Program-made: the position numbers and the translations under genes
The notes under the pieces: model-generated
Database searches by the model: none
The model's input: the letters and a program-made list of their open reading frames with translations, nothing else
What the model was told of the DNA's origin: nothing
Source of the DNA: Podarcis gaigeae
Lineage: Eukaryota
Direction: 5' to 3' (one strand)
DNA length: 64,000 bases
Assembly (NCBI GenBank): GCA_964106915.2
Contig: OZ066914.1
Part shown: in pieces, positions 1,622 through 63,689 of the stretch
Position numbering within the stretch: position 1 is the first letter of the stretch
Layout: the number at the start of each line of letters is the position of its first letter

Positions 1622-2217
1622 CATAGCTGTCAACTTACAGATTTGAAAATAAGGGACCAGCAGCCTTGAAAATAAGGGACCAGCAGCCAAAATAAGGGAC
1701 CTGCAGCCTCACCTGTTCCAGGCACTCCAGTCTTCCTGTCCTCCTGCAGTCTGGTCAAACTCATGCTGGTAGCTTCAAGAACACTGTCCAACCAACTTTG
1801 TAACCAGAGGTTCAATTGAATAGAATCTGAATCACATGCACCACAAGGCCTATGCAGCCTCAACTTAATATGGCTCCCTGGCCTGGCTTTGCACTGCAAA
1901 GTTTGCAGCAGCACATGCAACAAAATGGCGTCCAGCATTCAAAAAACCCCTCAGCTTGCATTAACTAGCCACACACAAGGCATGCAAGCTCCACCCCCCC
2001 AGTCGTTCTTAGACATCTTATTGGGTGAGCAACACAGCCAAGCAACACAGTTGGAGCCTCCCTCCTCCCTGGCCGGCAGGGAGGGAGGGAGAGGAGCTGC
2101 TTCCTTTGAAATTTAAAGGATGACATTTAAGGGACACCTATCAATAAGGGACAGCAGCGGGACATGGCGCTGGAATAAGGGACTGTCCCTTCAAATAAGT
2201 CACACTTGACAGCTATG
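1622..2217. mobile_element. Non-autonomous hAT-type DNA transposon (MITE)
   Basis: Perfect 12-bp TIR CATAGCTGTCAA/TTGACAGCTATG; perfect 8-bp TSD CTTTGGAG (1614-1621, 2218-2225); subterminal AATAAGGGAC repeats at both ends. Confidence 0.9.
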
Positions 2218-19700: not shown

Positions 19701-20975
19701 GCACTTTTCCTGACAGTAAATGTGTCAGATGCAGGTAAGATGCATCCACACACAAGGAGGAGGTGCTTGTTTATTCACAGAAGGACTGGTATTTGAAGGA
19801 GGTTGTATTTGACATATAGGATATGATTTGGCTAAGTGTTGAAGTTAGAAAGAGCTGTATTTCAACTGTATTCAGAGCAAGGCTAGTGTCAAACCTTAAG
19901 CCCATCAAATACACAGCATAGCTTAAGAAAATGTTACAAACTATAGTTAAGACCCAATAGGCCATAGCCACTGGTTGCCATTGTTATAATGGGTGTGCCT
20001 TGAAGCAGTAAGATTTCCCATTTCTGACTTACACACATGCTTTTTGGTTTAGTTTGTTCAAGGGGTACAAGAAGCATTTGGGAACCATAACCAAGAACCC
20101 TGCCTTTTCTTCTTCACCCCCTCCAACAAATTCCTATTTGGATATCTCTCTTCTGTCTTTCCACTGCTGTCACAGTGGGAGGGTAATATGTGTTGCGTGG
20201 CCACCATCCTAAAGTGGCAATCATAGTGGTTTTAGAGAACCGAAAGTGGCATGCATGTAGACTTGTGCAGTTACCTCCTGGAAAACCAAGGTGTTTCCCT
20301 GTCCATCTTGGCTGCAGGAGTTCTATTCCACCATCCTAGATGTTCTAACACCAGATGATGTACGTGTCCTAGTAGAGACAGAGGATGAATTCGCTCGACG
20401 TGGACAGTTTGAGCGAGTTTTCCCCTCGCGCTTCTCCATGCACTACCTACGTTTCTTTGAGCAGCCGCGATACTACAACATCCTTACTTCCCAGTGGGAG
20501 CTGAAATATTTCGTGAATAAGGTCAAAGGTAAAAAAGTTCCCATCACCTCCTTCTTGCAAGCTCCCTTCTAGGATAAGCAGTTAGTTGTTTGATCCAGCC
20601 CTTTATAAGTAGACTGCATACCTTGCTTTCTAACCCAGAGCTGTCTGTGCTCTTTCACATAGCATTATTATCTGTCATCCTTACAGGCTGCCAGTGTGGT
20701 TTGAGTGTTGCTTCTTGCTGGGTCATTTCTGTCATCTTCCCCACTCCCCACACCTTGCAGCCACATCTTTGGCTTTGGGGCAGAAGTCTCTCTTTATTCT
20801 TGCCCACCCCTTTGTCCTTTCATTGGTTTCTATTGCCTATCTTTAAGCCCACACCCTCACCCAGAGCCTTCCTGTTCATCAGTGTTACCTGCTTCTCTTG
20901 AGTGTATCCAGATAATTCCATAGAATAGACCAGGGAGTTCAACATCTTCAAATGAGCATCATACCATTGCAGCTT

Positions 20976-39000: not shown

Positions 39001-42000
39001 CACCTTCCTTGCACTACAGGCTCTTTTGCTGCATTCTGATGAAATTCCATGTGCTGTAGCCCATTGCTGTGAGCTCATTGGATCCTGTCCCATTTCTGTC
39101 CCTGGTGTTTCTACTTACCCTCTCCCTTTGAGCTTGGTCCACACAAAAACTCAGAAGAGGGGTAGCTAATGCGGTACCTTCCAGATGTTGATCCAACTCT
39201 TTTCATCCTTAGCCAGCATGGCCCAATGGTCAAGGATGATGGCAAGTGAAAGCCAACATGTGGAGGGCACCATGTGGGCTGCCCCTGACTCACAGGGAAG
39301 GTGCAAGGCTCAAGGAGGATCCTCCTCCATCTGCTCACTGTTTGCATGTTCAGTGGTAGAGCACATGCTCTGCTTGCAAATGATCTGAGATTCAATCCCT
39401 GGCATCTCCTGTTTGGGTAGGGAAATGCCCCCTAGCTAAAACCCTGGAGGGTGGCTGCCAATCAGGATGCAGGCAGTGCTAGGCTAAATGGATCATTGGT
39501 CTGATTCAGTACAACAGCTATAGTACCCTTTCTCTCTTCAAAGTGGGGAAACCCAGCCAGATGGGCAGGATATAAATAATAAAATTATTTTTAAAAAAGT
39601 ATTATTCATTGAATCACTGTCCCAATTTCTGAGATGCTTTCAGTGCACATAACATGGGAAGAAAGTTGATGTTATGGTAAATCATCTTCAACTTGGCAGT
39701 GATTAACCATATGGTATAGTGACCTCAAGCTGTTGTATGTCAAAATCTCAGAAACTCAACATCCTTCTAAATAGACTGGAAACCCGACTGACCTCTTTTG
39801 CCAGATTCCCCTCCCCCCACAGAAGTAGCTTCCTCCTTAACCTGTAGTAGTTCTCCCATCTTACCTAGGGCAACAGTTCCATATACTATTCAGACGCTTT
39901 CCTTTCTCCCCAGAGGTGTATTTGCAAGGTTTCTTCAAACCCTTGGTGTGCATCTCCCCAAATGATAGGTAAGTCATTCCTGATGCTTGCTTACTCCTCC
40001 CACAGATCCCTCCTCTTTGGCAGGAAAGGTGGGAAAGAATTTTAATGAATACATAATAATAGTGTGGCGAGCTTTGATGGAAAGAGTCTTGTACTTTTAA
40101 CAACTGCATGGCAGTTGGTCTAAAAGAGTGAAGTTTTACTCATCAGTTCCTTGCCAGAAAACACTTCACTTGTTGATTTCTGCCTGTCGAACAGCTGAAT
40201 GCACAGAGTCTTTGTCCATAATAGGGGTGGGGGAACCCTCACTGTCTCACAACGCCTACTCCATTTAGAGCAGCTGTGCTGCCTGATGCCCAAAGTGGAA
40301 GCAGTAAATGGGTACAGTCCCTGGGTACAGGCATGTCATATTGCCCTTTTGTTTCTCCCTTTCCTAGCCTATTTGATGCTGTTTATTCCTTGATTAAGCA
40401 CAAGATCCATCGGCTGCCTGTTATCGAGCCCATCTCAGGAAACGTCCTACACATTCTGACCCACAAACGTATCCTCAAGTTCCTGCATATCTTCGTGAGT
40501 GTCTGGTGATCCCAAATTCCTCTTGGCATAGATGATGGCAAGGCAGATTATTTTTGGTCTCAGTGGGTCCTATATTGGCCCAGTGCCCGATGCTCTCTTT
40601 TATCATTTATTTATTGGTATAGAGCCAACAGGGTATGTGGTGCCTTGCAGAGCTGCATAGGGAAAAATGGACTGGCCACTTCCCTCAAGATGCTCACGAT
40701 CTAAAATAGACAATTGGGAAAACAGTAGAAGTTGGGAGAGTAAGAGGTTAGGCTCCACTAGGGATGTAAAAAGGTATCATTTTATTTTTTGTCCCATATT
40801 CATTGTCTGCAGTGGTACCTCGGGTTACATACGCTTCAGGTTACAGACTCTGCTAACCCAGAAATAGTGCTTCAGGTTAAGAACTTTGCTTCAGGATGAG
40901 AACAGAAATCGTGCTCTGGTGGCATAGCGGCAGCAGGAGGCCCCATTAGCTAAAATGGTGCTTCAGGTTAAGAACAGTTTCAGGTTAAGTACCGACCTCC
41001 AGAATGAATTAAGTACTTAACCCGAGGTACCACTGTATTTCTATTCTGCTGCAGTTCAGCTTCTGCAAAAAATGTTATCTAGCTCACTGTTCACTGTGGC
41101 CAAATTTAATAATGCAATTAATTACATTATTGTGTGAATGCACATCATTCATTTCCATTGTGGGGCAGGGGGAGCATCACCAATAATGCACTGAAAAAAA
41201 TAACCTCCTCTTCTCTCACTACAGGGAGCCATGCTTCCAAAGCCACGATTCCTGCAGAAAACCATCCTGGAACTAGGCATTGGCACCTTCCGTGACGTTG
41301 CCATGGTCCTGGAGTCAGCCCCTGTCTACACAGCCTTGGAGATTTTTGTGGACCGCAGGGTCTCAGCATTGCCTGTTGTTAATGAAAAAGGTACTTGCTG
41401 CGGGGAGCTCCTCTGCTCTGCTCACCGCTATGTTTGCCGTTTCAGCTGAGCCTTACCTCTCTCTCATATGTTATCAGCTTTCTAATTCAGCCTCTACTTT
41501 TTTCTTGGGCCCTGAAATTCCACAAACCCTATGTGACATTTATCAAACAATCTGAGCCATTGCATGATGTAGCTTTTGCCAAGCTGCCCCGTTTTGGGGT
41601 TCCATATTTGAATCCCACCCACCCTGCTTGAGCCAATGAACCATAGTGCTATATGCAACATTTCAGAGATAGTGTTAAATCACTATCACCCAGATGTTGT
41701 CACTTTTGTAAATTCCACCCACTGTCATAAAATCAGGAACCCTCTTTTTATGTAGTAACTCATAAACTTCAAGATGTGATAAAAGCCTGGAAAAGTGGTG
41801 TTCACATATATGATAATATGAATTAATAATGCTCTGTGTCTAGCTCTATTCAAGACTTTATTGTGAGTGGATTTTTTTCTTTTATCGGGTATTTCTTAAT
41901 TATTTTTCTGATTAATACATATGGAATACTTGCTTAGTTGGAACGTATTAAATATATCAATACTTTTTAAAAATTGATGATAGCTACATTATGAGGTAGG

Positions 42001-42256
42001 TGAATGGGAGGGTTTTCTCTACTGAGTCCCTTATGCTGCTTCCCTCACTTTCTCTTTACAGGGAGGGTAGTTGGCCTCTACTCTCGCTTTGATGTGATTG
42101 TAAGTATAGTACAATCATATTTTTGCAGGTGTGAAGTTGGTTGGTGGGAGAATGGATTTTTTTAATAGCCAAAGCTAAGAAAATGGAATGTTTCCCTGTC
42201 TTGCCTCTAGGGGATGCAGTACCTGTTTAAAATTTTAAGATGGGAAGATCACTTGG

Positions 42257-42296
<40 letters not shown>

Positions 42297-44255
42297 TTTG
42301 GTATCCCTTGCAAATGTTTCCTGAATTCCATCTATCTAAAGGGATTGAGGTGGTGATACAAATTTTCACTACTATTTTTCAGCTCTAGACAGAGAAGTCA
42401 GCAGCAGTTTCCCTCTTAAACATAGGGTGAAAAGCAAAGGAGAACATTGTCTCCAGTGCTGTGGTTCTAAACTGATGGCGGATTAGGGTCCATGTATCGA
42501 AGTGGCTGTCACAAGCTGCATTAAACCAGTGTGTAGCAACTGAGCCTTGTTTCAGAAAGGGTTGCCTGGATATTAAAGCCAGAGTTCTCCCATCTTTGCA
42601 AAGTGGGATTGGGGTGGCTTTATTCTCTGGTCATGCCAAGCCCCTGCCTGGATGATATGTCATGGTGGCTTCAAACCATTTCCTTGTCTCTGCTTAGCAC
42701 TTGGCTGCCCAGAAGTCCTACAACAACCTGGACATTACTGTGGGGGAAGCACTGAAGCAGCGCTCAGTCTGCCTGGAAGGGGTGCTCACCTGCCATCCTT
42801 ACGAAACGATGGAAGACATTATTGATCGCATCGCCAAGGAGCAGGTATGCCAGCGTGGAGCAGGAAGAATGTGCACTTTAGGTAACAGTTGCTCTGTGGC
42901 AAGACCTTGACCTCTCCAGGTCCATAAAATCTGACTTCTGGAGTTAAATGTTCAGCCTAAACCTCTTCTGACTCTACTTTCTGCTTAGTCAAGTCATGCC
43001 CAGTGACACTTTCTAACCCAGTCAGCCTCTAATCCTGTCGCCTGATTGACTTTGCTCTATTGGCATAGGTGTTCCAGCAGTAACCATCTCTAGCTTGTTC
43101 TTCCCCATGACACTCATGGAAGAGACAAGTCCACACTAGTGGCTTACAGGCCCTAGGAAAAGGATGGGAAATATTGTGGAATACCGTATTCCAACCATTT
43201 AAGCAAAAAACAAAAACTCCCAAAATAATTCTCATGAGACTTCTCCAGGGTAGAAGCTATTCCCAATGAATCACTTAAAAAGGGGGTCCACCGGGAAAGC
43301 CGAGAGCCCACACAGAAGAGGTAGATTGCTCAGGTGGGTGGTCCCCAAGGTAAGTGAAACCATCTTCAGATGCTGATGAGAACTGGACACCTAAAGGCTG
43401 CTTCACATGTTATATGAGAGAAAACAGCTGTTTGCTGCCATACAGCAGGAAGCCATGGCAAGTCCTAGCTCCCTGCTGCACATACAGGTCTCATGCATAT
43501 GGTGGGAAACATCTATCTGTTGCGTGTAATGATTTACTGAACCAATGGGGAACCTGTGGTCCTTCACAAAGTGTTGGGACCCCAATTCCCATCAGCCCCA
43601 GCCAGTATGGTGAATGGTCAGGGATGAAGGGTAATGTATCATAGAATCATAGTTGGAATTGACCACAAGGGCCATCAAGTCCAACCCCCTGCCAAGCAGG
43701 AAACAAAAACACCTAGAGGGTCACAGATTCCCCATTCTAGAAGCAAACAGGTGTTTCCATATGCAAACACACATACCTTAAAAAATTATAATGTGGGAAG
43801 CAGCCCTAGGCTTATTTTCTGTACAGCACAGTTGCTCCTCTGCAACTAAAGGCTAATAGGCGGCGCAACAGCACCCAGCTTTAACTTTCCTGCCTGCCAC
43901 TCTTAATTTTAACTTTTCCCAGAATGCCCTGTCCCTCGGCTATCTTGCTGTACTAGGATGGTGATGATGTTAATAATAATAATAATAATAGCATTATGCC
44001 ACCAAAGGGAAACGTTTCTGAGGTTTGCCTCAGGAGGGAGGGGTAACTCTAGCCCTGTGGATGTCAAGCACTCATCTCGGCTCATCCCGTTACCGTACTC
44101 TTCTCTCCGTGATGGTGTGTGGCTCACTCATCTGGCAGGTCCATCGTCTGGTTCTGGTGGATGAGAAGAAAACCCCGCGGGGGATCGTGTCCCTCTCTGA
44201 CATTCTCCAAGCCCTGGTTCTCACGCCTGCAGGTATCGATGCCCTAAACTCTTAA
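32522..44255 (+). CDS. PRKAG3: AMP-activated protein kinase subunit gamma-3, whole gene CDS: join(32522..32563,34305..34344,35349..36001,37833..37914,38226..38284,38519..38564,39914..39968,40368..40494,41225..41390,42062..42099,42698..42844,44139..44255); 1572 nt, 523 aa
   Basis: Four CBS domains ([87 protein letters not shown]). The LHIFG and PAGIDAL C-terminus and the position next to TTLL4 point to gamma-3. All introns GT-AG and in phase. Confidence 0.94.
34305..34344 (+). CDS. PRKAG3: PRKAG3 coding exon 2 ([13 protein letters not shown])
   Basis: Long pyrimidine tract + ccag| ... CAG|gtgggt; 40 nt supplies the phase 0 to 1 shift needed to join exons 1 and 3. Confidence 0.72.
35349..36001 (+). 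CDS. PRKAG3: PRKAG3 coding exon 3 (N-terminal extension + start of CBS1)
   Basis: Within the 299-aa ORF; cccactag| ... CAG|gtaagg. The 3' end is firm; the acceptor is inferred. Confidence 0.85.
35366..35617 (+). repeat. Degenerate coding tandem repeat, 12 x 21 bp (heptads), in PRKAG3 exon 3
   Basis: 11 of 12 units start GAT/GAG/GAA in exact 21-nt register. Confidence 0.75.
37833..37914 (+). CDS. PRKAG3: PRKAG3 exon 4 ([27 protein letters not shown])
   Basis: tccccag| ... TGG|gtaagt. Confidence 0.95.
38226..38284 (+). CDS. PRKAG3: PRKAG3 exon 5 ([20 protein letters not shown])
   Basis: actgcag| ... CTG|gtgagt. Confidence 0.95.
38519..38564 (+). CDS. PRKAG3: PRKAG3 exon 6 ([15 protein letters not shown])
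   Basis: tttttag| ... GAG|gtgagg. Confidence 0.95.
39348..39520 (+). mobile_element. tRNA-derived SINE (Squam3-like), decayed
   Basis: TCAGTGGTAGAGCA head, TTCAATCCCTGGCATCTCC B-box region, same tail. Confidence 0.65.
39914..39968 (+). CDS. PRKAG3: PRKAG3 exon 7 ([18 protein letters not shown])
   Basis: tccccag| ... TAG|gtaagt. Confidence 0.95.
40368..40494 (+). CDS. PRKAG3: PRKAG3 exon 8 ([19 protein letters not shown]...LHIF)
   Basis: ttcctag| ... TTC|gtgagt. Confidence 0.95.
40810..41035 (+). mobile_element. Tc1/mariner (pogo/Tigger-like) MITE, copy 1
   Basis: 18-bp perfect TIR CAGTGGTACCTCGGGTTA; TA on the right flank (left reads TG); internal GCTTCAGGTTA repeats; similar copies at 48850 and 61094. 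Confidence 0.88.
41225..41390 (+). CDS. PRKAG3: PRKAG3 exon 9 ([10 protein letters not shown]...[11 protein letters not shown])
   Basis: cactacag| ... AAG|gtactt. Confidence 0.95.
42062..42099 (+). CDS. PRKAG3: PRKAG3 exon 10 ([13 protein letters not shown])
   Basis: ctttacag| ... ATT|gtaagt. Confidence 0.95.
42259..42295. repeat. (TG)n microsatellite
   Basis: Read directly. Confidence 0.95.
42698..42844 (+). CDS. PRKAG3: PRKAG3 exon 11 ([12 protein letters not shown]...RIAKEQ)
   Basis: tgcttag| ... CAG|gtatgc. Confidence 0.95.
44139..44255 (+). CDS. PRKAG3: PRKAG3 last coding exon (VHRLVLVD...PAGIDALNS*)
   Basis: tctggcag|; TAA at 44253-44255. Confidence 0.93.
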
Positions 44256-49091: not shown

Positions 49092-51222
49092 TATTGAGTT
49101 CCCCTAGCAGCAACAGAAGGATTTGCAAGGAGGTAGGTAGCATTTTCCCAGCAGACTTAGTGGGGAGGGTCTCACTGCAGGAAAGCATGCAGTTTCTCTT
49201 CTTGTTGTTGTGTTCATGTTCTTTGAAATAAACTTTCATATTAAGACACAGACTATATGCAAACAAGCATGATTACGTTTGTTTGTATGTATGCATAAGG
49301 TACTTGGATATTACAGGGAAGTAGAAAGTTCCTGGGGATAGTTACACCTTTTCTTTCAACACCTATCTTGTATCCCACCCATCTTGTACCCACTGGAGGC
49401 CACATGTTCAGTGGCCAGTTGGTGATGCTATTACGTTTCACAGGAAGAGCATTGCATCTCCAGGATAGGGGGCAGCCAGTAGGGGGCTCTGCAGATGTTT
49501 TGGATTAAAGCTGTCATCAGCTCCACCCAGCATGGCCGGTGATTGTAATTGTGGTCCAAAACATCTGAAGGGCACCAAATTTGCTGCTCGCTGCTCCAGG
49601 AAGAAAAAAAGAAACTAGCAAGGGCACATTTAAAGGTAGGAGAAAGGAAGAGAGTGGACTTCTTTGAATGATAAATAGCAAGACTGTCACATGCTGATAT
49701 TATAGTTTTTATTATGATAGATTGATAACAGAGTGTCTTTATTATTAGACTATTAGGATCTTCTTGTTCAAGTCTTTTCAAATATATTTATGAAAGAAAA
49801 ATCCACAATGGAATTTCAATGGGGACCTGAAAATTCAAAACACCCTTTGAGAGCATCCTCATCCACACCCAATTCCCTGCTGTTGACCATGCCTTTAAGG
49901 CACTCAGCACCCATTAGAGGGACCTCACTGAGCATTTAGAACCACAGTTCCCAGCCATTGGAGTAAGGTTGACTCACACATTGGAAAAGAAGTTCATGCT
50001 ACAGCTCCTTCCACTCAAAGGGGAAATAATTTGCTAAGAGCCATGGAATCTTTCAGGTGGGAAGAACCCAAAATTCCCTCAGCAAAATGCATAAGTTTAG
50101 AGCACTGTTGAAAGGAGCAGAGAAAGGATTGGGCAGGAGTGAGTCTCAAGAGAGATAAGGGAAGCGATAGACTGTGTGAGAGACAAAACTGAAACAAAAC
50201 CAAGTCATTGCTCTGGACAGTCTTTCATCTCCCACCCTTCTTTGATACTATTTACTCTAGAAGGATATGTGGACATTTTAGCCTCAGGAGACTCTTATGA
50301 CGTTTTCATGACTGATTGATACAGGGTAATGCAAAAGTACAGAACTAAGAAGTCTTGCTTCCTTAAGTTCAGCATCAATTAAGTTCCATCAGTGATTAAG
50401 GCACACCCGTTAACAGTAAATGGCCTCACTCAGGGCTGACATGTGGCCAAGCTGGGTCAGAGGTACTACTTCTAGGATGATTCTGGGCAGAAGGGATTGA
50501 TTGGGTTCTGCGCCAGCACAGCTGACACCCCCACAAACCCCAAATGGAGTAGGCACAGGAGTTACAGAAACTGTGAAGAGGGGGGGGGGAATAGTAATAC
50601 CAACCTCATGTGCTAGTAAATACCATCACTTTGTGTTTAGCCATTCCAGTTTTTGAGGAAGCTGCCCTCTGTAAACATGTAAGTGCTCTAACGAGGACCA
50701 GGGACAGCATCAAGAGCAAAAATCAGTGATTGAGGTGATGAGGATTCTATTGCTAGAAAAACCTCCCAATGTGCCATGTTTGGTTTCTGATCAGAATGAT
50801 ACCACTAATGAACTGCTCCAGGAAATGACTTTCCCCATCCACCACATGACAGCAACTCTGCCATTCAGGTATAACCGGTAATGGACATGGGGGGAAAGGC
50901 ACAAAAGGTATGCACACAAGGTAAGCTGAACCCAGTTTTCACTGCCCCAGAGTCCATCATAACAGAGGAAACAGATGGCTCAAGAACATGCCTGGAGTTT
51001 TCAGCAAACTCGGAAGTCCACAAAGCAGTATGAAAGGGGAGGGGTAAGATCTCCTCTGTTCCTGATCATGTAGGCTGGAGAAACAATTGTCAGCCACCAT
51101 TAAGAGATAAGGCACATAGCATCTCCCTTTGAAATGTGAGGACACAGGCCTGGAATCTGGAGGTGGCAAGGAAGAGGGTTGCTGGGAGGAAGCCAAGGCA
51201 ACACTGGTGCATCAGAGTTGCT

Positions 51223-51277
51223 TCATGATACTGGAAGTGGGAAGAATTTGCCCGTCTTCTTGGTGCGGGAGGCATTC
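51223..51277 (-). CDS. RACGAP1-like last coding exon (NASRTKKTGKFFPLPVS*)
   Basis: gtcttctgccag|; phase 2 fits; GKFF resembles the RACGAP1 C-terminal GNFF. Confidence 0.85.
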
Positions 51278-54200
51278 CTGGCAGAAGACAAAACAGGAGA
51301 GGGAGACCCCAGAGTGGACATCTATGGCAGCCCCCTTGGCAGCAGCCCCTCTGGGCAGGTGAAAGGAAGGTCAGGGAACCCCCACAACATGTAGGAGCCT
51401 CCACACCTCAGGGGCATGGGCACATAGACAGCTGTGGCAACAAGAGTTTGATAACCCTTCCCAAACAAAGCCAGTCCTTATCCAAGGATGGTAGCAGCAC
51501 TCAGTAGCAGCAGGGTTGGGGAATCTTCTTCAGCCGGAAGAAAGCCTTCCCTCACAGGCAACCTTCCTGGTGTGGCAAACTAGGGGGCAGCAGGGCCGGA
51601 AGCAAAAGTGGTCAGAGCAGCCGGTGTGACTTATCATTGACTATCTTAGGACTATGTTCCAGCCATACGAAAACCAGAAGTTCTCTCACACACACCCAAA
51701 CAGACACTTGCTACTTCTCCATCCATACAAGCAGAGCACCATCATAGTTTAACAGCACATTCCAGTTAGGCAAAAGCAGGGAGTGGAGCAGTATCTGTGA
51801 TGGGAAAGTCCAGGGAGACCCGACAAGGAGGCCTTGATGGCTGCATTCAGCTCACAGGTCCCCCTCCCCTGCAACCCCACAAAATGCACCCCAGGCAGCT
51901 GTGCCAGCTCACTTACGAGGGTGGGAAGGTGGTCCCAATGCAGTCCCATAGCTTATTAGGGAGACAGCCACCTCCTGGGCTCATCTGGATGGTGCTGACT
52001 TCAGGGGGAGTCGGAGGAAAGAAGATCTGGTCTGTGGGTGGAAGGTTGGAGGGAAGTATTAGGTCCAGCTCCCCCCCCCCCCCTGTCCTTCGGAGGATCA
52101 CCAAAACTGAGTAAGGATGGGGCTCCTCTATTTCTTCCTCCCCAAGCCACCCACACTTCAGTTCACCTTGCTCATTCACGATGCTGGGCTTTTGCACCGA
52201 AGGCACCAGGTTCTCCTGCTCTTCTCCCACAAAATGTCTCCAGAACGAAAGAGGCAGTGCTAAGAGATTGGCAACCACCTGCAGGGGAATGGAATCATGT
52301 TAGCTTTTGTCTGCCGCCTAATCGTGAAAATTCTTCCCTATCTGCCCCACCCGGCCTTCATTAGCTGGTTCTTGCTTATGTTCCACAGAGGTGTTTATCT
52401 GCCCATTGTTTTCACATGGATTCAGTTATCATCATAAATTTATTGACAATGTGGTAGAGATGAGAGCTTGCAAAAACACTCTCACAAGCCAATATTTGAA
52501 ACAAAGCATTCAGAATAATTCTCTGAACTCTGCTACTTGAGATGCAAGAGCTTTAATTAAGTAGCAGTCAGTTACGCCCCATTTGTTACCTTGACTTTTG
52601 ACTTTCTCACTGCAGCTTTCATGCTCTTATGAAATTTTATGGAATAAGGAAGCCATGGCACATAGCAAGGGCTCACTTGCTGAATTTTGCACTGGGCTAA
52701 AATTAGCGTTTCTGGGAATCTCAGCCCCCCCCTACCTTTTAATATAAAAAAGCAAGTTTCTAGCCCGTAAGACAAAAATATAATATTAAAAATCTGTTTA
52801 AAATGCTTGGCAAAGTCTCAGAAGTAAGCAGGATTTCCCACAGTCAGGACTTTGTTCCTGCCTTTGTCACAATTAGCAGAAGCATTTCTCCAAGCTCAGG
52901 GTACCTCCCCACATTCCACTGAGTTCACAAGAGCTACCCTCGTGCAACAAAAATAATCAATCCTCAGTTCCAAACTACATCAGGGTTTTGCTTGATGTAC
53001 AGTCTGAGCATTGTGCAGTCTTTCCTGCAGTCCCACAGAGGGTCAGAAAAAATTAAATACTACACACAAGTAACAAATACAGGTTGCATCTGTTACCAGG
53101 CATTGACGTGGTGTGTCTTCCATGATGATGCGTGGGGAAGGGCTAGGATTACTGTGCCCAACTAGAGTCGGTCCAAAGATACGTGCTAGGTTGTGCCGGT
53201 CCATTTGACACTCAGGGCTCTGCATGACCCTAAGGATAGAGAGATGGATCCATGGAGTCAAAGGCCAAAGGCCAAAGCAGAATCCTTCTAACCCAAAGGT
53301 ACAAAGCTCAGCTATATCCATAACATTCAGGGTGTCCATAACATGGATGGTGGGCATCACAGCAGGGTCAGAAACCACGGTTCATGCAGGCCACACAATG
53401 GGTGAAGCAACCAAGCCCACAAGACAAGACAAATTGCAGGGGACAGGATTAGACAAAACCCCTCATTAGCAGAAAATGTTTTCCTGACACCCCTTGATGC
53501 AACAGATATCCATTATGTTTGTTTCTTTTAAGTGAGAAGTGCATTATCTGATGTAGCAAATAAGTGTCCCAAAACAGGTTTCTGAACAGTTACTGTGGAT
53601 CCAATCAATGAACAGAAAAGAGTAGTGTTCAAACCTATTGTGCAAGACAGGAAAATACCCACAGTAGCAAGTGGTGCAGTCAGCACTTTCAACAAGGATG
53701 GAACAATTGTCAGATACTTATCTGCTTGCCCTTGTACAGAGTAAGAAAATTAAGAAAAGGAAGACCTTTATGGAATGAAATGTAAAGGCCTCTGCCTTTA
53801 CAAATGGGGAAGCAAATTCACAACACTCCTAACATGCAGAAACAGTATTATGTTGTTACAAAGGAAAATACATGGCTTGAACATGCAGTGTCAACTTTTG
53901 CCAAGGCAGAAATCGCCACCAAGTTGAGGGAAAGTTTTGCACATTTTAGAGTCCCAAGTATCCCCTTCAAGCCTAAAATCTGCCCTCACCAGCTTACCTA
54001 TGGAGATGCAGCACCAGAAAAGCCAGAGTGTCCCTATTGGCCAGAGGCAACTTCATCACCACATGACAGAGTGCAGTCTGGCGAGCAGCTTCATCTGGAA
54101 TTTCTGGGTGGGAAGAAAATAGTGCTATGAGGTTGGGGGCGGGGGTTCATTACTACCACTCCAGAAAAGGCACTTTCCACGTACAGCCTTGTCCAAACTC

Positions 54201-55281
54201 ACCTGAAGCACGCAGGAAGGCAGGGTGCAGGGCAAAGGTCACTAGAGGTTCCTTCAGGCTCCTCAGAAAGTCCTTGAGAACCCCGCAGATCACATTGACA
54301 TCAGCCACCTGGTCCAGTGAGGGAAGCGCTCCTCGGGCACAAAGCAGCTTGCGCTTCCATTCTTGAATGAGGTGCTCTGAACCTGGCACTCTGTATAGCC
54401 CAGCCTGCAGATCACGAGGAGGAAAAGACAAGAGGAACAGATGCACACACAAAAGCTTGTATCGGCCACTAAGGTACAGTCCCAGCCGGCACTTCAGGCC
54501 TGGAATCATTAACACTAGTCAGAAGCATCTGCCGGCACCATTTTGTGGCCTTGCCTCTTTCTGCTTTTTAAAGATGTCACGGCCATTTTGTGTAATGCCG
54601 CACCCTCATGGATACTGTAGGACTTGAAATGTGAAAGACAGGGCCTTGGATTGGGCCTGGAAGTATATAATTAACTCCTGTGGCTGGATAAAAACAGGCA
54701 CTGGGTATGCAAGCCCATCTCCCACCACCAGTAAGGAGAGTAGCAGAGGCAGAAAGTTCCAGGCCTAGGGAGAGGGTCAGAACAGGCAACACCAACACAG
54801 GATGTCCAATGAGAAAGCTCAGAGCTTGCAGAATGCAAAGAACGAGGGGACAGATAAGGAGAACAGCAGCAGCAGAGATCAGAAGTAAGATTATGAAGAA
54901 CCTAAAGAGGCTGAGAGGAATTTGGGGAAGAAAAAGGAGCCAGTGAACAGAAATATACAAATATTAAAAATGCATTAGAAAACCAAACAACCAGCCAAGA
55001 TGAAAAAGGAAAAGGAAGAGGATCAGAAGTCAGGAGAAGCAAGTGAACTAAATGCAACGCCTCTATCCCAACACTTAGCATAGGGGAAGTAGGGCAAAAA
55101 GAAAAATATCACAGAAGTTGTGCAGTGACAGAATTAGATGTGGAAATCCAGGTTGATGACAGTTAAGAGTAAACCATTATAAGCTTTGAAGCTGTAGCTA
55201 CTTAAGAAGAAAACCACAGCAATTCAGTAAACCACAAGCAGGACAAGAAGAGTAATGTGGAATGGAAATCTGGTTTAACTG

Positions 55282-55312
<31 letters not shown>

Positions 55313-58300
55313 CATAATAAAACAGCAGCTCAACCAGCCTTTCAGAGCCCCACTGCTGGCCCCCCCCCCCCGCAAATACACTTACCTCCTTCAGGCCACG
55401 CCTTTCCACTTGATTCACACACTGGATGACTAGTGGGGGCACCAGAGGTGGGGTGGAGGGTGCAAAATCTGCCAGAATGCCCTGAGAAGACATGGGGAAC
55501 CTTAGAAGAGGCAACTGGTAGTCGGGGGTATACTGTCTGACAGTGGAGGAAGAACACAGGCATTGTGGCTAGTAGCCATTGATCACGGCTAGTAGCCATC
55601 AATGTGGATTGGGGGGGGAAACAGCTCAGCCACACCTGCCACACACGTCACTCCAGGCACCCGAATTGCTCTTGCCCCTGGCAAAGCCGCCAGCACTGAA
55701 ATAAAAGCCCCACGAGCTCCCATCCCAGGGAAGCCTCCTCACCTCTCTCACTCTGGGGGAGGCAGTCGGCCTGCACACGGACGGGCTGCGTTCTTTGCAC
55801 TCGGGATGCACTACAAGCTGGCAGGGCCGACATTTCAGGGCCATCTTCCCAAAGCGCAAGCGGGATTTGCAAACTGCACACGACTCCAGGCTGATCATCT
55901 TGTAGCCAGTGAAGAGGGAAGAGCATTAGATGAGCACAGCAGATATCAAGAGGAAAAAGACCACAGGCTTCCCATAGCTTACCCCTTTGTACAATATCCC
56001 TCTAGCTTGAATTTGTCCAATGAAGCTCTTGGATTTATTTATTGCATTTATACACTGCCTTTCTGCCAAGGCGGTTGACAGTTTTAAAACATCAAATAAA
56101 TGATACAAAAAGCATAGTTGGCCCAGGGGTAGGTGGGGAGGGGAGAGTCCAAGTGGCACAGGCTCTGGTGCTGCCCCTGCCTGCCCCCTACCCCAATCTC
56201 TTCTTCATGGAGCTTTATTTGTAGGTATATTCCACACCATGTTACTGGCATGATCCTTAGTTCCTTAGTGGTGGATTTGTACTGGAGCACCCACACATCG
56301 TTCCACTTTATCAGCTATCCTGAGATGCTTTCAAAATGTTACTGCATGATTGCCACCAGGGCGAGCACTCTTGGGTAAGACAGAAGCAGAACTTTTGTGG
56401 TATGCAGTGTTACAAGATTTTAACAGGAAGTTATGAGACTTGCACAAAATTGGAAACAAATGCAGACGGTTGGCTTAGGAGAACCCAGTCAACATATCAT
56501 TAAGAGCACTTGAAAGCATCCCAGCAGATAAGCACTCCAGCTGAGGGCGTTGCTGAGAGGCAGCCCTGTTCTTCTTTTCTCACCGTCTTGGAAGTAAAGT
56601 GGTGCTCTTGGAGGGGTGGTGTTCCCTGTGTGGGAGAAGGAGAAAAGGGGTCCTGAACACCCCTCAACTCAGTCCTAATCTTCGTGCCAATGGTGTCACT
56701 CTCAGCCTGGCTATTGCTTCTGCCTGACCCCTCACTGCTGCCCCAGAAGGAAGTGATGTCTGTGGAGAGAAGACCACACATCAGAGACACATTTAAAGGC
56801 ATGGAAACTTTCATCCAGCGTTCAAGCTGGCACCTCCCAGAAGGCACTGTTGGATCTTAGCACTGGTCTACCTACTTCCATCTGCAGGCTCCCATTTGGA
56901 GTATGACACCCTGGGGGTGCAGAAGCCCACAATCAAGAGCTAGTGTGACTGCTCTGTGTGGACAGAGTTGGCCAGGAACCTGGGCTAAGGTGGGGCAGAC
57001 AACTTGCTCAATGCCCTCCAGTGGTCCTGGGCTTGGGAGCATGGTGGCGGTCAACTGTCCAGAGGACAGACAGGTGGGAGAATGGACTCAAAAGTTTGCA
57101 AACCAGACCCCATCTTTAAAGGAGGGGGAGACAAGCCAAATAATCTCCCTGCTCCTCATAAAGCCATTCTTGCTATTCTAGCTCCTATGAATACATACCT
57201 CCACATCTGAGATCACTATTAAACCATTTGGACACACTCAGGGTCTGCCTGCCAGTCTCTTGCACATAACATGGCTCGTGGTTTTGTGGTTCCACCACTC
57301 CTCCTCCTCTAAACCAGCACTGCCTCCTAACATGTTTGGACTGCACACCCTTTCTTCAAAGGAAAGGCATAAGTACCCTGAGCATGTACTGAGTAGATTC
57401 CCCATCCCCACTTACAACTAAGGAAAACGGGATGGCGATGAGGAGCCCAGGCAGAACAGGATTTTTCGTCCCTTCACTGTCCCCAACTCCCTTTACAGCA
57501 TTCTGGAATTTTGGAAACTGAAAAGCTTATTGCAGCATATTCTCTAGTTCTACTACTAAACCTTCTGTCAACACTCATTACCTAGCCATGTCTGCCTTCA
57601 GAACAGGCCAGGCCTTCAGAACAGGCCAGGCCACACCCAAAAAAGAAGGAGGGAAGAGGCACCTGAGCGTGTGGACAGGCAACGGCTCTGCTGGGATCGG
57701 CGACGGGGCACCACAGCAATCGGGGGCAAAACGTGGGCAGTGGCTCCGGATCTCAGAGTCGCCACAGACATCTTATTGGCCTGGCAAGATTGGAGGGGAG
57801 GGGCAGAGAATGATGAATGGCAGTCTGGATCAAACCCCTTTAAATGAAGGATGCAGGATTATTCTCTCTCTCACACACACACGTTCAAAGGAATTTTAAC
57901 CCTAAGAGCTTGCAGAACATAAGGGAAACCCCGTTTTACTTGAAGCTTCATTGCCCTGTTTGATCACGCCATGTATAACACATACCCTGCTGTGCAATCT
58001 ACCACATTGCAGTATCTTTTTATCAGAGCCATTTATTATCAGAGCTGATTTTGCAATGGTGTCAAAGGTTGCAGGCTGGTTCTTCCCTTGTACAGAGGCA
58101 TCACCAGGTACTTACACTTGGAGGCGGAGGTGCCACAGATGTTTGTGCAGATTTGGTTGTTGCCACTGGCTGAATCAGGGGCACGAGGGAGGAGCACTGG
58201 AGGAGAGAAACAGGTGTGAGAGCAACAGGAAGACAGATCCACGTAATTCCGGCTGAGGGAAGAACAGCACAAATTGCTTGCCATTTTTCAGACTATCAAC

Positions 58301-61300
58301 AAGACAGAGCAAAGTAAATGGTGGGATACAGACGAAGACATTTTCAAATATTTGAATGTGTAATTAGAATTGCATATGAGTGAGGAAGATTTATCTCCTC
58401 CTGTCCAGTTGTGGTCTCTGATGAAACAGATGTTTGAGGCAGGCACACAGAAATAATATAGGACGGGTGCTTCAGTTCTGGAATATGTGGCAGCTGAAGG
58501 ACAGGATGCTTCCCAGCCCCACCTTCACTTACCCCTTTGTCTCTGCCTTTGAGGGATTTTATCACTTCCAAATCCTAGAAGAAAACAGAAAAGGAAAGCC
58601 TGAGAAAGGATGTAGACACATTTGTAGCTCATGGGCTACTTAAAATGAAGGCCCACCCTGAGCTTGAGCACATCTTACCACTTCTTCCCATCTCAAGTTT
58701 TGAACTGTGTGTATACATACATACATACATATGCATCATTTTAAAAGCTTCTGCAGATAGCCACCTGTATCAGATTGTATCTACATCCCAGAAGCCTCTT
58801 CAGCATTCACAGTATGCACACATGTTTCAATGCCTATAAGAATCTGTCCGCTTGCTTTCATCAACAACACACATGTATCTTACTAAGGTTCCATATTCTT
58901 GTTTTCTGCAAGAAGCTACCCTAAACCCTGGCATTCTGGCTACAGTCAAACAGAATGCTAGTGTACTTTTAGTTTGTTGCTGGCTTAATTTTATTTTTTA
59001 AAAAAAGTTGTAATTGTTTTTACTTTATTATTTATGTAAAGTATTTTGAGTGTTGTTGTTTTTTACCATCAAGTAGTATACAAATTTTATTAAATAAATA
59101 AAATAAGTACAGAGTTGCCTGCAATCTGCATTAGGAGGTGTGCCTGCCTCCATCATAATTAACTTTCCAGAGGAATTTGTAAACATCCCTGTTTATCCAG
59201 GCATTTGGGGGATGAGGAATAGTTCCTGGCCACCCCACGACCATTGGATGGAAGATGTAATTGCTTTTAGAACGTTTTGAACTGAAGCTGTGTTCATATG
59301 TTTTTAACCGTTTTAGAATGTTTTTGCTTAATTTTAAAGTTGTGTATCTGTTTGTTGACCTGGGGAGGAAGAGCGAGATATTAATGCAATAAGAAATACG
59401 CAAATAAACAATGCAACTAAATTACATCTGTCACGGTATCTGGTCTCCAAATAATCTGTGCTCTCATTAGAACAAGGTGTCCATTTCTCCCCCCAAAACA
59501 GCAAATAAATGTTCGAACCTATGAAGGGTGTTGACAACTTGCTTTACACAAATACGCACCAGTTAGGTCAAAGGCTGGTTTAGTCCTGCTCCTCCTCACA
59601 TAGTTTAGTCTTTTTAAAAACAGCAAAGCTATTTTGCTTTCCCTTGTTGTTGCTAGAATAGTTGCAAGACTACTCTGGAAATCTGGGGAGAAGGGGGAAG
59701 GTATGATGGTGCTGCAATACATGCACTTTGCAATAGGTGCTCCCCACAGCTAGCTTTCCCTAGTTCAAACCAAATTCTATTAAAATGTTGCATAACTGGT
59801 TCTCTCCCCATAGAATAGAAATTTTTACTGTTTTGGGCATACAAGTGCCACAAGGGTGCTTTCAAACTGTTGCTCTTAATATGTCACATGCATCTTCTCC
59901 CTTCGGTGACCAAGCATAATTCCCCCTGAAAGAGTACCATATTTTTTTCGTGTATAACATGCTCCAGTGTATAAGACGCCCCCTATTTTGGGGGACTCAA
60001 AATTAAGAAAATTGGAGGGAGATTGACAAGGGTTGTTAAGCTCTTTTGGGGGGGGAACTGCCCAGAATTGCGCATACACTGACAATCTACCCAATTGCCA
60101 CTGCGACAGTCAATCGCCAAAAAAACTCACCACAACCACCAATCAGACGCCCTATTGTCACTGAGAAACTCCAACTCATGACAGCAGCCAATCACACGTC
60201 CCCTCCTCGGCACTACTCATGTATAAGATGAGCCAAGATTTTTAATATAATTTTTAAAGTAAAAAAAACCCTCGTCTAACACACGGGAAAGTGTGATACT
60301 TTGTTTCAAACCAACTCCCTTCCACATATATTGCCTCTGTTCATATTGATGTGTATCTCTGAAAACATACACTAACATACAGGGCCTGTTGCAGTAGTAT
60401 GTGTGGCACCATCAATTTCAAGTGTGAAGTCTTGGCTTCTGCTCCTGTAGAGCGCAGAGATCTCAGTCCACAGTAAGCACAAGAGTCTGACTGTGTCCTG
60501 GAGCTTTCAGTTCTGACCTGGCAAGCCTGGGAGGAAGGGATGCTTACTTACCACTTCGTCATCCGAGTGATCAAAGCTGATGTCAGATATGATTGAGGCC
60601 CCAAGTCCTTCCACTGCAGATGGCCTACAGAGAAGAGTAACACAGGGGCTGTATCACAAATAACAGCCTCATATCACGCCTGTCTCTCCCACTCTTGCTA
60701 TATAGCTCAGTTCTTCTAATCCAGTATCTTCTCCAAACACCCATCATTTAAAAAAAAAATTTAAATGTGGGGATACAATTGTGGGAAAGCTACATTTTCT
60801 TTTCATTCAGTCCCTTTCTTTGCAAGGACCCCATGATGAAAGTGAGACAGTGGTGGTGAAAGAAACATTACTGCTATTTAATCAAGTTTATTGTTCATTG
60901 CTATTTAATCAAGTTTATTGTAAGTTTATCATTCTAGCCCAAAGCCATGACAAGTTGTAATTACACTTGCTGTGTTGTTCTGGCATTGTGGGTTTGCATA
61001 TAAACTAGTCGCCTATCATGATTGTTATTTTCGGTATGCATGTCAAGGGGCCCCTTCAGACCTGTAGAATTGGCACTTGGTTTTTTTATACTACAGTGGT
61101 ACCTGGGGTTACATACGCTTCAGGTTACACACTCCACTAACCCAGAAATAGTACCTCAGGTTAAGAACTTTGCTTCAGGATGAGGACAGAAATCGTGCTC
61201 CGGCGGTGCAGCGGCAGGATGCCCCATTAGCTAAAGTGGTGCTTCAGGTTAAGGATAGTTTCAGGTTAAGTATGGAACTCCGGAACGAATTAAGTACTTA

Positions 61301-63689
61301 ACCCGAGGTACCACTGTACTTCTCAATCATAGGAGCCAACTCCTGGGGGCCAAAGGGTCTTTGCACCCCCAATAAAATAGCTCATGGGCATTGCCAGTGT
61401 GTATGCACTGTGTCATGTGATGAATCATGCAGGGTAGGGCCTACCTGGGCCCCCCAATATTTTATTCAAGTTGGCACCCCTGTTCTCAATGTGGATATTT
61501 ACACCAGTACATCGGTATTTAATTTGAAAGCCTTTTGCCCCCAAATCGTGTNNNNNNNNNNNNNNNNNNNNNNNNNNNNNNNNNNNNNNNNNNNNNNNNN
61601 NNNNNNNNNNNNNNNNNNNNNNNNNNNNNNNNNNNNNNNNNNNNNNNNNNNNNNNNNNNNNNNNNNNNNNNNNNNNNNNNNNNNNNNNNNNNNNNNNNNN
61701 NNNTATGGTAACAACTACCTGCACATCTGAATCACCAGAAACTTTCTGCAAATAGTAATAATTTGACTCTACCCATTATTGGAACCAGTAAAGCTAAACA
61801 GCAGGAATTAGGCAACTAAGCTGAGAGATAAAACTGATCTGCTGTGTATTTGGGCTGTAGGATGTATATACAACTGTTTGATTGAATTTCATTTATTGTA
61901 TGATTTGTGGCATGTGTGAAACCAGAGATTTACATATGTCCATTTTTAAAAACAAAAATATCCAGACAGGACTCAAGGATTGATTTGCTTGCCTGAGAGA
62001 AGCTGCAATATCAGCTGTCTTAAGTACTCCCTTGCCACTCACCACTTGCCAGGCAGCAGGGTGCTGTGGCTGAAACGTGGCCTTTCTAAAGCCGCCAGGG
62101 CTGAGCGCTGGTCCTCATTGAAAGGACTGATTTGTGAATCAGCCATCAGGTAGTCATAGATAAGCTGCAGCTTGCGCTCCTGAGAGGGATGAAAAGGGGT
62201 GAGGGGTGAGTAGAACAATGGAGACCCTGTTGGAATGAAGAATGTAGCAGTCTTCAAGTGCAGCCGCTTTGCAGCTGTAACCATGTTCAGACTGGTACAT
62301 CCCTCCTTAGGGTGGGTAGCACCTAGTTCTCCCAAGCCAACCTAATGCAAGTGAACTGTTTTTGCCTGGGATGCATGTCCAGGACTGCAACTGACTATGC
62401 ACTAAATACATCCAAGTTCTGTGCTCCCAAAGTCCAAAATTCTGCAGTCTTAATTTCATGAGAACAGTAAATTTCCACCTGCTGCATAGCTCAGTGTCTA
62501 AGCTACTGAGTCACATCAGCTCCTGGCAGCTTTTATGAGACCTGAAACAGCACAGCTGTAGTTGTTATGGTGCAGCAGTCTCTTGTCCATCTATCGTGCC
62601 AAACACTAGCTTCTATTCGGGTTGTGCTTAAAATTTCCTTCTTGCTCCAGCCACATCTCTTTAGTTCCTAAGTTCTGTGGCAGCACCTCCCCGCTCCAGG
62701 TTTAGATATTATTCTTCGTAGCATGCACCACTCTGACACAACACAAACCATTCACCTACTAGGCTTTATCGCCCTAAGAACGTAATACGAAGGGCATCAT
62801 TATTTGGTTGGAATCTTATTTGCTCTTGTTTTCTGCTGTTGCTTTTCTGCATATGAATTTTACTTTTCACTGTTACCCACCCTGGAAGTGCTTTTTGGCA
62901 ATGAAGAGTGGGATACAGGTGCTTAAAGTTAAATAGTCATGTTGATCAGACCAAAGGTCCTGTATCCTGTTTCTCAGAGGGTGCCTCTGGAAAGGCTAGG
63001 CTTCTGGATGGGATAGCCCCCTCTTGCTATTGTTCTCCCACCAATTGGTTTTCAGAAGCCTGCTACCTCAGATCCTGGAAGCAGTACAGAGCAACCATGA
63101 CAGACAGCAATTGATAGCCTTATACATAATGAATTTATCTTTAAAAGCCATATAAACTGGTGGCTGTCGCTACACCTTAATTAGGAGCTTGTGAAGAACT
63201 ACGTAGGGAAGTGCTATAGCTCAGTGGTAAAGCATCTGCTTTGTATGCACAAATCCTTGGCATCTCCAGGTAGGGCTGTCATTGCCACCTGGCCCCTGGA
63301 AAGAAGATCCTTCCAGTCAATGTAGACAAATACCAAGCTAGATGGACCAAAACCCTGAACTCAGTACAAGGCAGCTACCTTATGGTCTGTCCTGAATCAG
63401 CTTCATTTAATGGCCTCAGATTCTTACATGAGAAGGGGAGAAAAACTCCCCCCATCTACTTTTCTCCACCATGCCCCTCCAAGAACCTGCTTTTCCAGCT
63501 CAGCTTCTGCCCGGTGCCTTTTCTTCATCTCCACCTCCACTTGGTTGCGGGCGTGTTTCAACTTCACTTCCAGGACTGAACATTCGTACTCCGACTGGCG
63601 CAGCTTCTCCCTTGTTCCCTGCAAGTCGCAATCCAGGCGGCAACATCGCTGGCGCATCCCCTCGAGACATTTGGCAATCTGGAGGCAAT
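51223..63689 (-). CDS. Rac GTPase-activating protein 1-like (RACGAP1/MgcRacGAP/CYK-4 paralogue), 5'-partial: complement(join(51223..51277,51917..52031,52167..52278,53097..53229,53998..54103,54203..54404,55386..55481,55743..55898,56584..56759,57663..57780,58116..58196,58533..58574,60552..60624,62043..62179,63487..63689))
   Basis: 15 GT-AG exons, 1805 nt, one stop-free frame ending in TGA. Coiled coil LEVKLKHARNQVEVEMKKR, SDISFD motif, C1 domain with 8 Zn ligands, RhoGAP GLYR...LKDFLRSLKEPL...NRDTLAFL...MDRHNLARIFGPTLV, and C-terminal GKFF. Looks too divergent to be the RACGAP1 orthologue, so no symbol is given. Confidence 0.92.
51917..52031 (-). CDS. RACGAP1-like exon (DQIFFPPTPPEVSTIQMSPG...TTFPP)
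   Basis: cacccacag| ... CTC|gtaagt. Confidence 0.8.
52167..52278 (-). CDS. RACGAP1-like exon (VVANLLALPLSFWRHFVGEEQENL)
   Basis: cccctgcag| ... AAG|gtgaac. Confidence 0.88.
53097..53229 (-). CDS. RACGAP1-like exon (VMQSPECQMDRHNLARIFGPTLVGHS...RQCL)
   Basis: tatccttag| ... CTG|gtaaca. Confidence 0.94.
53998..54103 (-). CDS. RACGAP1-like exon (EIPDEAARQTAL...LPLANRDTLAFLVLHLHR)
   Basis: cccacccag| ... TAG|gtaagc. Confidence 0.94.
54203..54404 (-). CDS. RACGAP1-like RhoGAP exon with arginine finger (AGLYRVPG...LKDFLRSLKEPLVTF)
   Basis: atctgcag| ... CAG|gtgagt. Confidence 0.94.
55284..55312. repeat. (GA)n microsatellite
   Basis: Read directly. Confidence 0.95.
55386..55481 (-). CDS. RACGAP1-like exon (GILADFAPSTPPLVPPLVIQCVNQVERRGLKE)
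   Basis: tcttctcag| ... GAG|gtaagt. Confidence 0.94.
55743..55898 (-). CDS. RACGAP1-like C1-domain exon (MISLESCAVCKSRLRFGKMALKCRPCQLVVHPECKERSPSVC)
   Basis: ctacaag| ... GAG|gtgagg. Confidence 0.92.
56584..56759 (-). CDS. RACGAP1-like exon (DITSFWGSSE...QEHHFTSKT)
   Basis: ctctccacag| ... ACG|gtgaga. Confidence 0.88.
57663..57780 (-). CDS. RACGAP1-like exon (ANKMSVATLR...VVPRRRSQQSRCLSTRS)
   Basis: atcttgccag| ... CAG|gtgcct; 118 nt, phase 0 to 1. Confidence 0.78.
58116..58196 (-). CDS. RACGAP1-like exon (CSSLVPLIQPVATTKSAQTSVAPPPPS)
   Basis: ctctcctccag| ... AGT|gtaagt; 81 nt, phase 0-0. Confidence 0.75.
58533..58574 (-). CDS. RACGAP1-like exon (DLEVIKSLKGRDKG)
   Basis: ttttcttctag| ... 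GGG|gtaagt; phase 0-0. Confidence 0.8.
59937..60296. mobile_element. Degenerate Tc1/mariner (Tc2/pogo-like) MITE
   Basis: TA flanks; CCATATTTTTTTCGTGTATAA start and CGTCTAACACACGGGAAAGTGTGA end form decayed inverted termini; internal TGTATAAGA repeats. Confidence 0.6.
60552..60624 (-). CDS. RACGAP1-like exon (PSAVEGLGASIISDISFDHSDDEV)
   Basis: tctctgtag| ... GTG|gtaagt. Confidence 0.9.
61094..61316 (+). mobile_element. Tc1/mariner (pogo/Tigger-like) MITE, copy 3
   Basis: TA-CAGTGGTACCT...AGGTACCACTG-TA. Confidence 0.88.
61328..61482. mobile_element. Short hAT-type MITE
   Basis: Perfect 8-bp TSD TTCTCAAT (61320-61327, 61483-61490); imperfect TIR CATAGGAGCCAACT / AGTTGGCACCCCTG. Confidence 0.8.
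61552..61703. other. Assembly gap (152 N) in a RACGAP1-like intron
   Basis: Run of N. The flanking exons join in phase, so no coding exon is required in the gap. Confidence 0.99.
62043..62179 (-). CDS. RACGAP1-like exon (ERKLQLIYDYLMAD...EDQRSALAAL)
   Basis: ccctctcag| ... GTG|gtgagt. Confidence 0.9.
63211..63384 (+). mobile_element. tRNA-derived SINE (Squam3-like)
   Basis: TAGCTCAGTGGTAAAGCATCTGCTTTG head, GCATCTCCAGGTAGGGCTG body, GCTAGATGGACCAA...CTCAGTACAAGGCAGC tail. Confidence 0.7.
63487..63689 (-). CDS. RACGAP1-like coiled-coil exon (CLQIAKCLEGMRQR...KLKHARNQVEVEMKKRHRAEAELEKQ)
   Basis: ccttctctag| ... CAG|gttctt; begins in phase 1, so an upstream coding exon is needed. Confidence 0.92.

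Follow-up and report, generated by a model that had tools for sequence, protein, structure and literature searches.

Centralspindlin is usually treated as a complex built from one kinesin and one Cyk4 gene, RACGAP1 (MgcRacGAP). RACGAP1 combines, in this order, N-terminal helices, a coiled coil, an acidic phospho-cluster, a C1 domain, a RhoGAP domain and a tail. Human Cyk4 carries four Plk1 sites, S149, S157, S164 and S170, and a PP2A-B56 motif of the form LxxIxE (PMC5586252), and the centralspindlin interface has been described as hydrophobic and malleable (PMC8501884). Here we describe a RACGAP1-like gene in 64,000 nucleotides (nt) of the lizard Podarcis gaigeae (contig OZ066914.1 of assembly GCA_964106915.2), a stretch that we call the window. 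The gene is genuine, ancient and under constraint, and belongs to the RACGAP1 family, as database pipelines have already labelled it. We conclude with high confidence that it is a second RACGAP1/Cyk4 gene of jawed vertebrates, a copy from an early-vertebrate whole-genome duplication that was kept from cartilaginous fish to sauropsids, is evolving at several times the rate of RACGAP1 and has probably disappeared from mammals.

The gene runs on the minus strand from 63689 to 51223 and has 15 coding exons within the window (Table 1), all with AG acceptors and GT donors in compatible phases. The spliced frame encodes 601 amino acids, ends in TGA and contains no internal stop, much as the initial annotation had proposed (15 exons and a stop-free frame of about 600 residues), and the exon sizes quoted there (203, 137, 81, 118, 96, 106 and 133 nt) are all correct. 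The donor after 63487 (GTTCTT) is weak, and the boundary agrees with the models of relatives. Those models also put the number of coding exons at 16. The first (about 27-28 codons) lies beyond the window, some 0.9 kb past 64000 as judged by the colinear Zootoca locus, where it stands about 1 kb upstream of exon 2; the frame in the window therefore has no start codon. An assembly gap (61552-61703) falls inside a 1418-nt intron (62042-60625). The exons on its two sides splice together in phase 2/2, and no further exon stands between their counterparts in the models of Zootoca, gecko, bird and gar, so the gap leaves the frame untouched; we accordingly rejected a broken frame or hidden exon at this point. 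An alternative exon 8 at 57062-56880 was likewise discarded, because it has a stop in the required frame and the RNA favours 56759-56584. Database queries were made with single exons or retrieved proteins, and the spliced model was used locally for the frame check, BLAST, alignments, trees and substitution ratios.

Contigs of related lizards, drawn from four runs in four studies and at least three organisms (run labels coded, RNA status guessed), match the exons in the downstream part of the gene. All eight introns in 51000-56900 are spliced in these contigs within 0-2 bases of the predicted sites, and a loose contig end matches the exon at 57663-57780, the next one upstream; splice support from contigs covers this stretch and that loose end. 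Because the introns are removed precisely, we take the contigs to be transcripts, which points to transcription of the gene in related lizards. The ratio of nonsynonymous to synonymous substitution rates (dN/dS, Nei-Gojobori) is 0.36 against Zootoca, 0.28 against gecko and 0.27 against finch, and falls to 0.13-0.21 in the GAP domain. The gene is under purifying selection. The initial annotation had argued from the introns that this is no retrocopy; introns, open frame, splicing and a dN/dS far below 1 together rule out both a retrocopy and a pseudogene.

Two observations suggest further transcript forms. One contig from run X10 joins 55480 to 56583, skipping the C1 exon in frame, which predicts an isoform without most of C1; several database isoforms of the paralogue also have no C1 match in Pfam. 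In runs X2, X9 and X10, contigs span much of the last intron (51278-51916) alongside the spliced form, reflecting either intron retention or an alternative C-terminus.

The encoded protein has the architecture of the Cyk4 family: coiled coil, low-complexity linker, C1 and RhoGAP. Pfam detects C1_1 (E 1e-8) in exon 9 (55743-55898), and three exons match RhoGAP. The coiled coil, the SDISFD motif, the complete C1 pattern (H-x12-C-x2-C-x12-C-x2-C-x4-H-x2-C-x7-C) and the arginine finger (GLYR) are all present, as first annotated. The coiled-coil exon taken alone gives no significant Pfam or PDB match. For the arginine-finger exon the best match of solved structure is human MgcRacGAP, far above chimaerin. 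Chimaerins share the placement of a C1 domain beside RhoGAP; however, they are only 27-34% identical in the fold search and have neither the coiled coil nor the Cyk4 N-terminus, and membership in the chimaerin family was rejected on these grounds. The AlphaFold model of the Zootoca orthologue shows a long N-terminal helix and a disordered linker, and its predicted GAP domain superimposes on MgcRacGAP with a root mean square deviation of about 1.1 A and a template modelling score of 0.95. The resemblance to RACGAP1 extends to gene structure, as had been proposed from exon sizes: the canonical gene of zebra finch and the paralogues of Lonchura, gar, gecko and Zootoca share 16 coding exons with matching boundaries, and the order of N-terminal helices, coiled coil, phospho-cluster, C1, RhoGAP and tail is the same in both.

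The sequence, in contrast, has diverged widely. By local BLAST the window protein is 96.8% identical to a RACGAP1-like protein of Podarcis raffonei and 93.5% identical to that of Zootoca. Its identity to the canonical RACGAP1 of Anolis is about 40% overall and 51% in the GAP domain, whereas Anolis RACGAP1 has an identity of 83% to the wombat protein and of 71% to that of a shark. This bears out the earlier remark that the divergence exceeds that of an amniote orthologue. A search with the arginine-finger exon separated a group of proteins at 70-80% identity from a background at 50-60%. Its snake, bird, turtle and crocodilian members carry the name "RACGAP1-like", and further members come from caecilians, salamanders, many frogs including Xenopus laevis (XELAEV_18044488mg), coelacanth, lungfish, gar, sturgeon, rays and teleosts (two entries named Si:ch1073-416j23.1). 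The "rac GTPase-activating protein 1-like" entries of P. raffonei, Zootoca, birds, turtles and Xenopus and the fish Si:ch1073-416j23.1 entries fall in one clade as orthologues. Both copies are present in 15 species, with a mutual identity of 38-52%. The best summed score in the exon search belonged to a 1352-residue protein with ten RhoGAP-like stretches, which is 41% identical and, as far as examined, lies outside the paralogue clade.

Phylogenetic analysis places the gene in a clade of its own. In a maximum-likelihood tree of 35 rows (JTT+F+G4, 1000 ultrafast bootstraps), the paralogue clade has support of 91.9/90 (Shimodaira-Hasegawa-like approximate likelihood ratio test/ultrafast bootstrap), the canonical clade 100/100 and the vertebrate clade holding both copies 100/100, with amphioxus outside. 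Each clade spans cartilaginous fish to birds and branches largely as the species do, and a quick tree of 56 rows under a mixture model agrees on two clades. Rays, gar, teleosts, lungfish, coelacanth, amphibians, turtles, crocodilians, birds and squamates make up the paralogue clade, and the Podarcis and Zootoca proteins sit beside the window model in both trees. The branches of this clade are several times longer than canonical ones, with a long branch at the sauropsid base in the 35-row tree. The separate clade, not nested among RACGAP1 orthologues, is what the initial annotation had foreseen.

One alternative is that the gene is a divergent but true RACGAP1 orthologue of lizards, or that it arose by a recent duplication within squamates. 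The retrieved proteins include no canonical RACGAP1 from a lacertid, and some pipelines use the plain name RACGAP1 for such genes. However, the approximately unbiased (AU) test rejects a grouping of the lizard genes with Anolis RACGAP1 (p 5e-76), 15 species carry both genes, and the 83% identity of Anolis RACGAP1 to wombat stands against 40% here. Joining both amniote copies (p 1e-5) or both bony-vertebrate copies (p 7e-6) is also rejected. The window protein does not nest among canonical proteins, and we regard the orthologue and the lineage-specific duplicate as ruled out by tree, AU test and identities, leaving them with a vanishingly small probability.

Both trees and the AU tests date the duplication after the divergence of amphioxus and before the split of cartilaginous and bony fish. 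The initial annotation had called the gene a retained duplicate of the second whole-genome duplication (2R). An ancient, separate paralogue is supported by the two clades, the AU tests and the shared 16-exon layout, but the second round is not distinguished from the first (1R), since neither of the two cyclostome placements compared is rejected (p-AU 0.26 and 0.42). The lamprey Lampetra planeri also has two RACGAP1-family genes.

Several points weigh against this overall reading of the gene. A canonical RACGAP1 was not seen in the Podarcis gaigeae genome; the ray sequence is placed inside the paralogue clade with moderate support and on a long branch; and the evidence of transcription comes from runs with coded labels whose RNA status is guessed.

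Mammals appear to have no counterpart. Searches with two queries, a bird protein and the tail region of a caecilian protein, gave no mammalian member among the top 120 clusters listed for each, and both lists reached coelacanth and gar. None of the exon-search matches that could be named as members of the paralogue clade was mammalian, among the matches listed. This negative comes from capped lists, with no mammalian locus inspected, and a fast-evolving or unannotated copy in monotremes or marsupials could escape. The sequence searches suggest that the paralogue was probably lost in mammals, as the initial annotation had supposed; such losses of ohnologues in mammals are common.

Database names are an unreliable guide to the two genes. 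Pipelines have automatically labelled the RACGAP1-like gene in well over 100 species, and the label carries no function. It errs in both directions: chicken XP_015145596 and the Lonchura, Pogona, gar, alligator and anchovy proteins are paralogues under the plain name RACGAP1, which can mislead comparative work, and a fast-evolving Odontesthes protein called "RACGAP1-like" lies within the canonical clade, where it is perhaps a copy from the teleost duplication. A literature search, whose coverage omitted most subscription journals, found no paper on the gene, and a paper on Xenopus MgcRacGAP never mentions a paralogue (PMC4571299). The gene has apparently never been studied.

The conserved residues give some indication of what the protein may do. 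Residue numbers follow the wombat protein, in which the serines stand at 149, 157, 164 and 170. Of 118 paralogue proteins, 116 have the complete C1 pattern, and the equivalents of R385, K423, F289 and K292 are near-invariant among the roughly 118 paralogue proteins aligned. R385, K423 and N495 all have equivalents in the window protein, and with the arginine finger and the supporting Lys and Asn kept, its RhoGAP domain is predicted to be active. Nearly all of these ~118 proteins also keep S157, T/S161 and the coiled-coil core, and the N-terminal helices retain their hydrophobic spacing. Both clades keep S157 and T161 almost without exception, and a serine at 164 is found only in the canonical RACGAP1 of jawed vertebrates. 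In the paralogues position 164 is D or E and position 387 is mostly P. Since lamprey and amphioxus share these states, the paralogue retains the ancestral residues, and S164 and S387 are innovations of the canonical protein.

We see about an even chance that the RACGAP1-like protein is an auxiliary, probably tissue-restricted Cyk4 subunit that works but is less tightly switched. Such a protein would dimerize through its conserved coiled coil, as a homodimer or as a heterodimer with RACGAP1, and its amphipathic N-terminal helices would dock on the neck of KIF23/MKLP1. The intact C1 domain would tether it to the membrane, and its GAP domain could act on Rac1, Cdc42 or RhoA at the midzone or midbody. 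Switching by Plk1 and PP2A-B56 would be weaker than in canonical Cyk4, because S157 and T/S161 alone are kept and position 164 is fixed as acidic.

A number of lineage-specific changes count against a subunit of this kind. Squamates have lost S149, and conservation of S170 is poor, so that in the window protein S157 is the sole survivor of the four Plk1 serines. The LxxIxE motif is lost in lacertids and birds; turtles, fish, most amphibians and most other squamates still have it. W44 is replaced by C in nearly every sauropsid copy, the window protein included, and F30 by Y or C in most. Judged by spacing, W44 would correspond to W51 of the C. elegans kinesin pocket (PMC8501884). The basic stretch has shrunk to 4 K/R in the window protein, compared with means of 6.1 in squamates and 11.1 in canonical proteins. 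Together with the long branch at the sauropsid base and the C1-skipping isoform, these losses could mean that the sauropsid protein, at least, has left centralspindlin and acts as a free dimeric C1-RhoGAP protein of interphase cells, with junctions, neurons or muscle among the conceivable sites. We consider this possible but doubtful: there is hardly any variation in the coiled-coil core, S157 or T/S161, the helices keep their spacing, and the interface tolerates substitution (PMC8501884).

The fast evolution of the gene allows two further explanations. Combined with retention in all egg-laying lineages sampled, it would fit a reproductive gene, in which case the protein might be a centralspindlin subunit of the germline, as the initial annotation had suggested, or of cleavage stages (intercellular bridges, meiosis, large yolky embryos) that is dispensable in mammals. 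This we think unlikely, as viviparous species such as Zootoca retain the gene and it appears in contigs of four tissue-unlabelled runs from at least three organisms. Alternatively, branches several times the canonical length and the loss of motifs lineage by lineage could mark a redundant dosage back-up of RACGAP1, weakly constrained and slowly decaying. The lineages that retain the paralogue split more than 400 million years ago. The gene is nonetheless intact across these deep splits, with a GAP-domain dN/dS of about 0.2 and near-invariant catalytic residues, and we hold simple redundancy to be improbable.

Extending the auxiliary-subunit reading, we tentatively suggest, as a conjecture with odds against it, that all non-mammalian jawed vertebrates carry a second type of centralspindlin, composed of the RACGAP1-like protein and KIF23 or of mixed dimers with RACGAP1. 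Its ECT2-binding cluster would be partly pre-acidified and, in birds and lacertids, largely uncoupled from PP2A-B56; it might serve a specialised division (egg cleavage, meiosis, germline bridges) or buffer the loss of RACGAP1, and mammals would have lost it. Xenopus, zebrafish and chicken are the main non-mammalian models of cytokinesis. If they do hold a hidden second intact Cyk4, which is easily tested, knockdown and mutant phenotypes may be buffered or tissue-dependent, and this would matter for work on cytokinesis in frog, fish and chicken. The paralogue family is also well suited to finding out which Plk1 sites ECT2 requires.

The chromosomal neighbourhood differs from that of RACGAP1 and provides a further argument for an ohnologue. 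In the window the gene is convergent with an AMPK gamma-subunit gene, which we take to be PRKAG3 from its sequence and long N-terminal extension, and a tubulin-tyrosine-ligase (TTL) domain gene, presumably TTLL4, lies further away. A long acidic N-terminal exon of the AMPK gamma gene occupies 35135-36043, with an open frame of 303 codons, and Tandem Repeats Finder at a score of 50 lists no 21-bp repeat in it. In Zootoca and gecko the order is cytochrome P450 gene, RACGAP1-like gene, AMPK gamma gene, and we assume the P450 gene to be CYP27A1. The synteny with PRKAG3 put forward in the initial annotation thus holds in squamates, in the block that corresponds to human 2q35, but not in ray, gar and bird, where the paralogue adjoins a GMPPA-type gene; PRKAG3 as the ancestral neighbour has no support outside squamates. 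The GMPPA-type gene lies downstream of the paralogue in ray, gar and finch, and those of bird and gar match each other. In finch, an Ig protein of SPEG size lies beyond it, and an ASIC-family first exon stands head-to-head upstream, 7.7-8.6 kb away (locus 1423-2019, minus strand), absent from the called genes there. In anchovy, TMEM169 is upstream of the paralogue.

Human 2q35 carries SPEG, GMPPA, ASIC4, TMEM169, TTLL4, CYP27A1 and PRKAG3; on human 12q13, RACGAP1 and ASIC1 stand head-to-head. ASIC1 was not seen within 10 kb of canonical RACGAP1 in zebra finch or arowana. Given the ray, gar and finch neighbours and these human maps, the ancestral site of the paralogue was most likely between ASIC4 and GMPPA, mirroring the RACGAP1-ASIC1 pair of the human map. 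The adjacency to PRKAG3 looks like a squamate rearrangement within the same chromosomal block, which would have moved the gene from the ASIC-GMPPA interval to a place between the P450 gene read as CYP27A1 and PRKAG3. The GMPPA/ASIC neighbourhood is a better argument for an ohnologue than PRKAG3.

Table 1. Coordinates of the RACGAP1-like gene and its neighbours in the window
Feature	Position	Length (nt)	Strand	Remarks
Exon 2 (first in window)	63487-63689	203	-	Coiled coil and second kinesin-binding helix; boundaries as in the models of Zootoca, gecko, bird and gar
Exon 3	62043-62179	137	-	End of coiled coil
Assembly gap (N)	61552-61703			Within intron 62042-60625
Exon 4	60552-60624	73	-	Acidic phospho-cluster, SDISFD; retains equivalents of S157 and 161 but not LxxIxE or S149
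Exon 5	58533-58574	42	-	Shortened basic linker
Exon 6	58116-58196	81	-	Linker
Exon 7	57663-57780	118	-	Linker; joint to exon 8 seen as loose contig end
Exon 8	56584-56759	176	-	Linker and start of C1; RNA-like contigs
Exon 9	55743-55898	156	-	C1 domain (Pfam); skipped in frame in one contig, run X10
Exon 10	55386-55481	96	-	Start of RhoGAP; RNA-like contigs
Exon 11	54203-54404	202	-	RhoGAP with arginine finger; Pfam, structure match, contigs
Exon 12	53998-54103	106	-	RhoGAP; Pfam, contigs
Exon 13	53097-53229	133	-	RhoGAP; Pfam, contigs
Exon 14	52167-52278	112	-	End of RhoGAP and start of tail; contigs
Exon 15	51917-52031	115	-	Tail; contigs
Exon 16 with stop codon	51223-51277	55	-	Ends in TGA; contigs
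Probable 3' untranslated region	49713-51222		-	Contigs reach about 1.3-1.5 kb past 51000; AATAAA near 49743 and 49713; end point inferred
AMPK gamma-subunit gene	35135-44252 (coding span approximate)		+	CBS domains, AMPK gamma match; convergent with RACGAP1-like gene
Tubulin-tyrosine-ligase-like gene	6402-20569 (exons seen, approximate)		+	TTL domain

Squamates apparently have the order TTLL4 (+), PRKAG3 (+), RACGAP1-like (-) and P450/CYP27A1 (-). Compared with the human order, the CYP27A1-PRKAG3 block would be inverted, and the RACGAP1-like gene lies within it.

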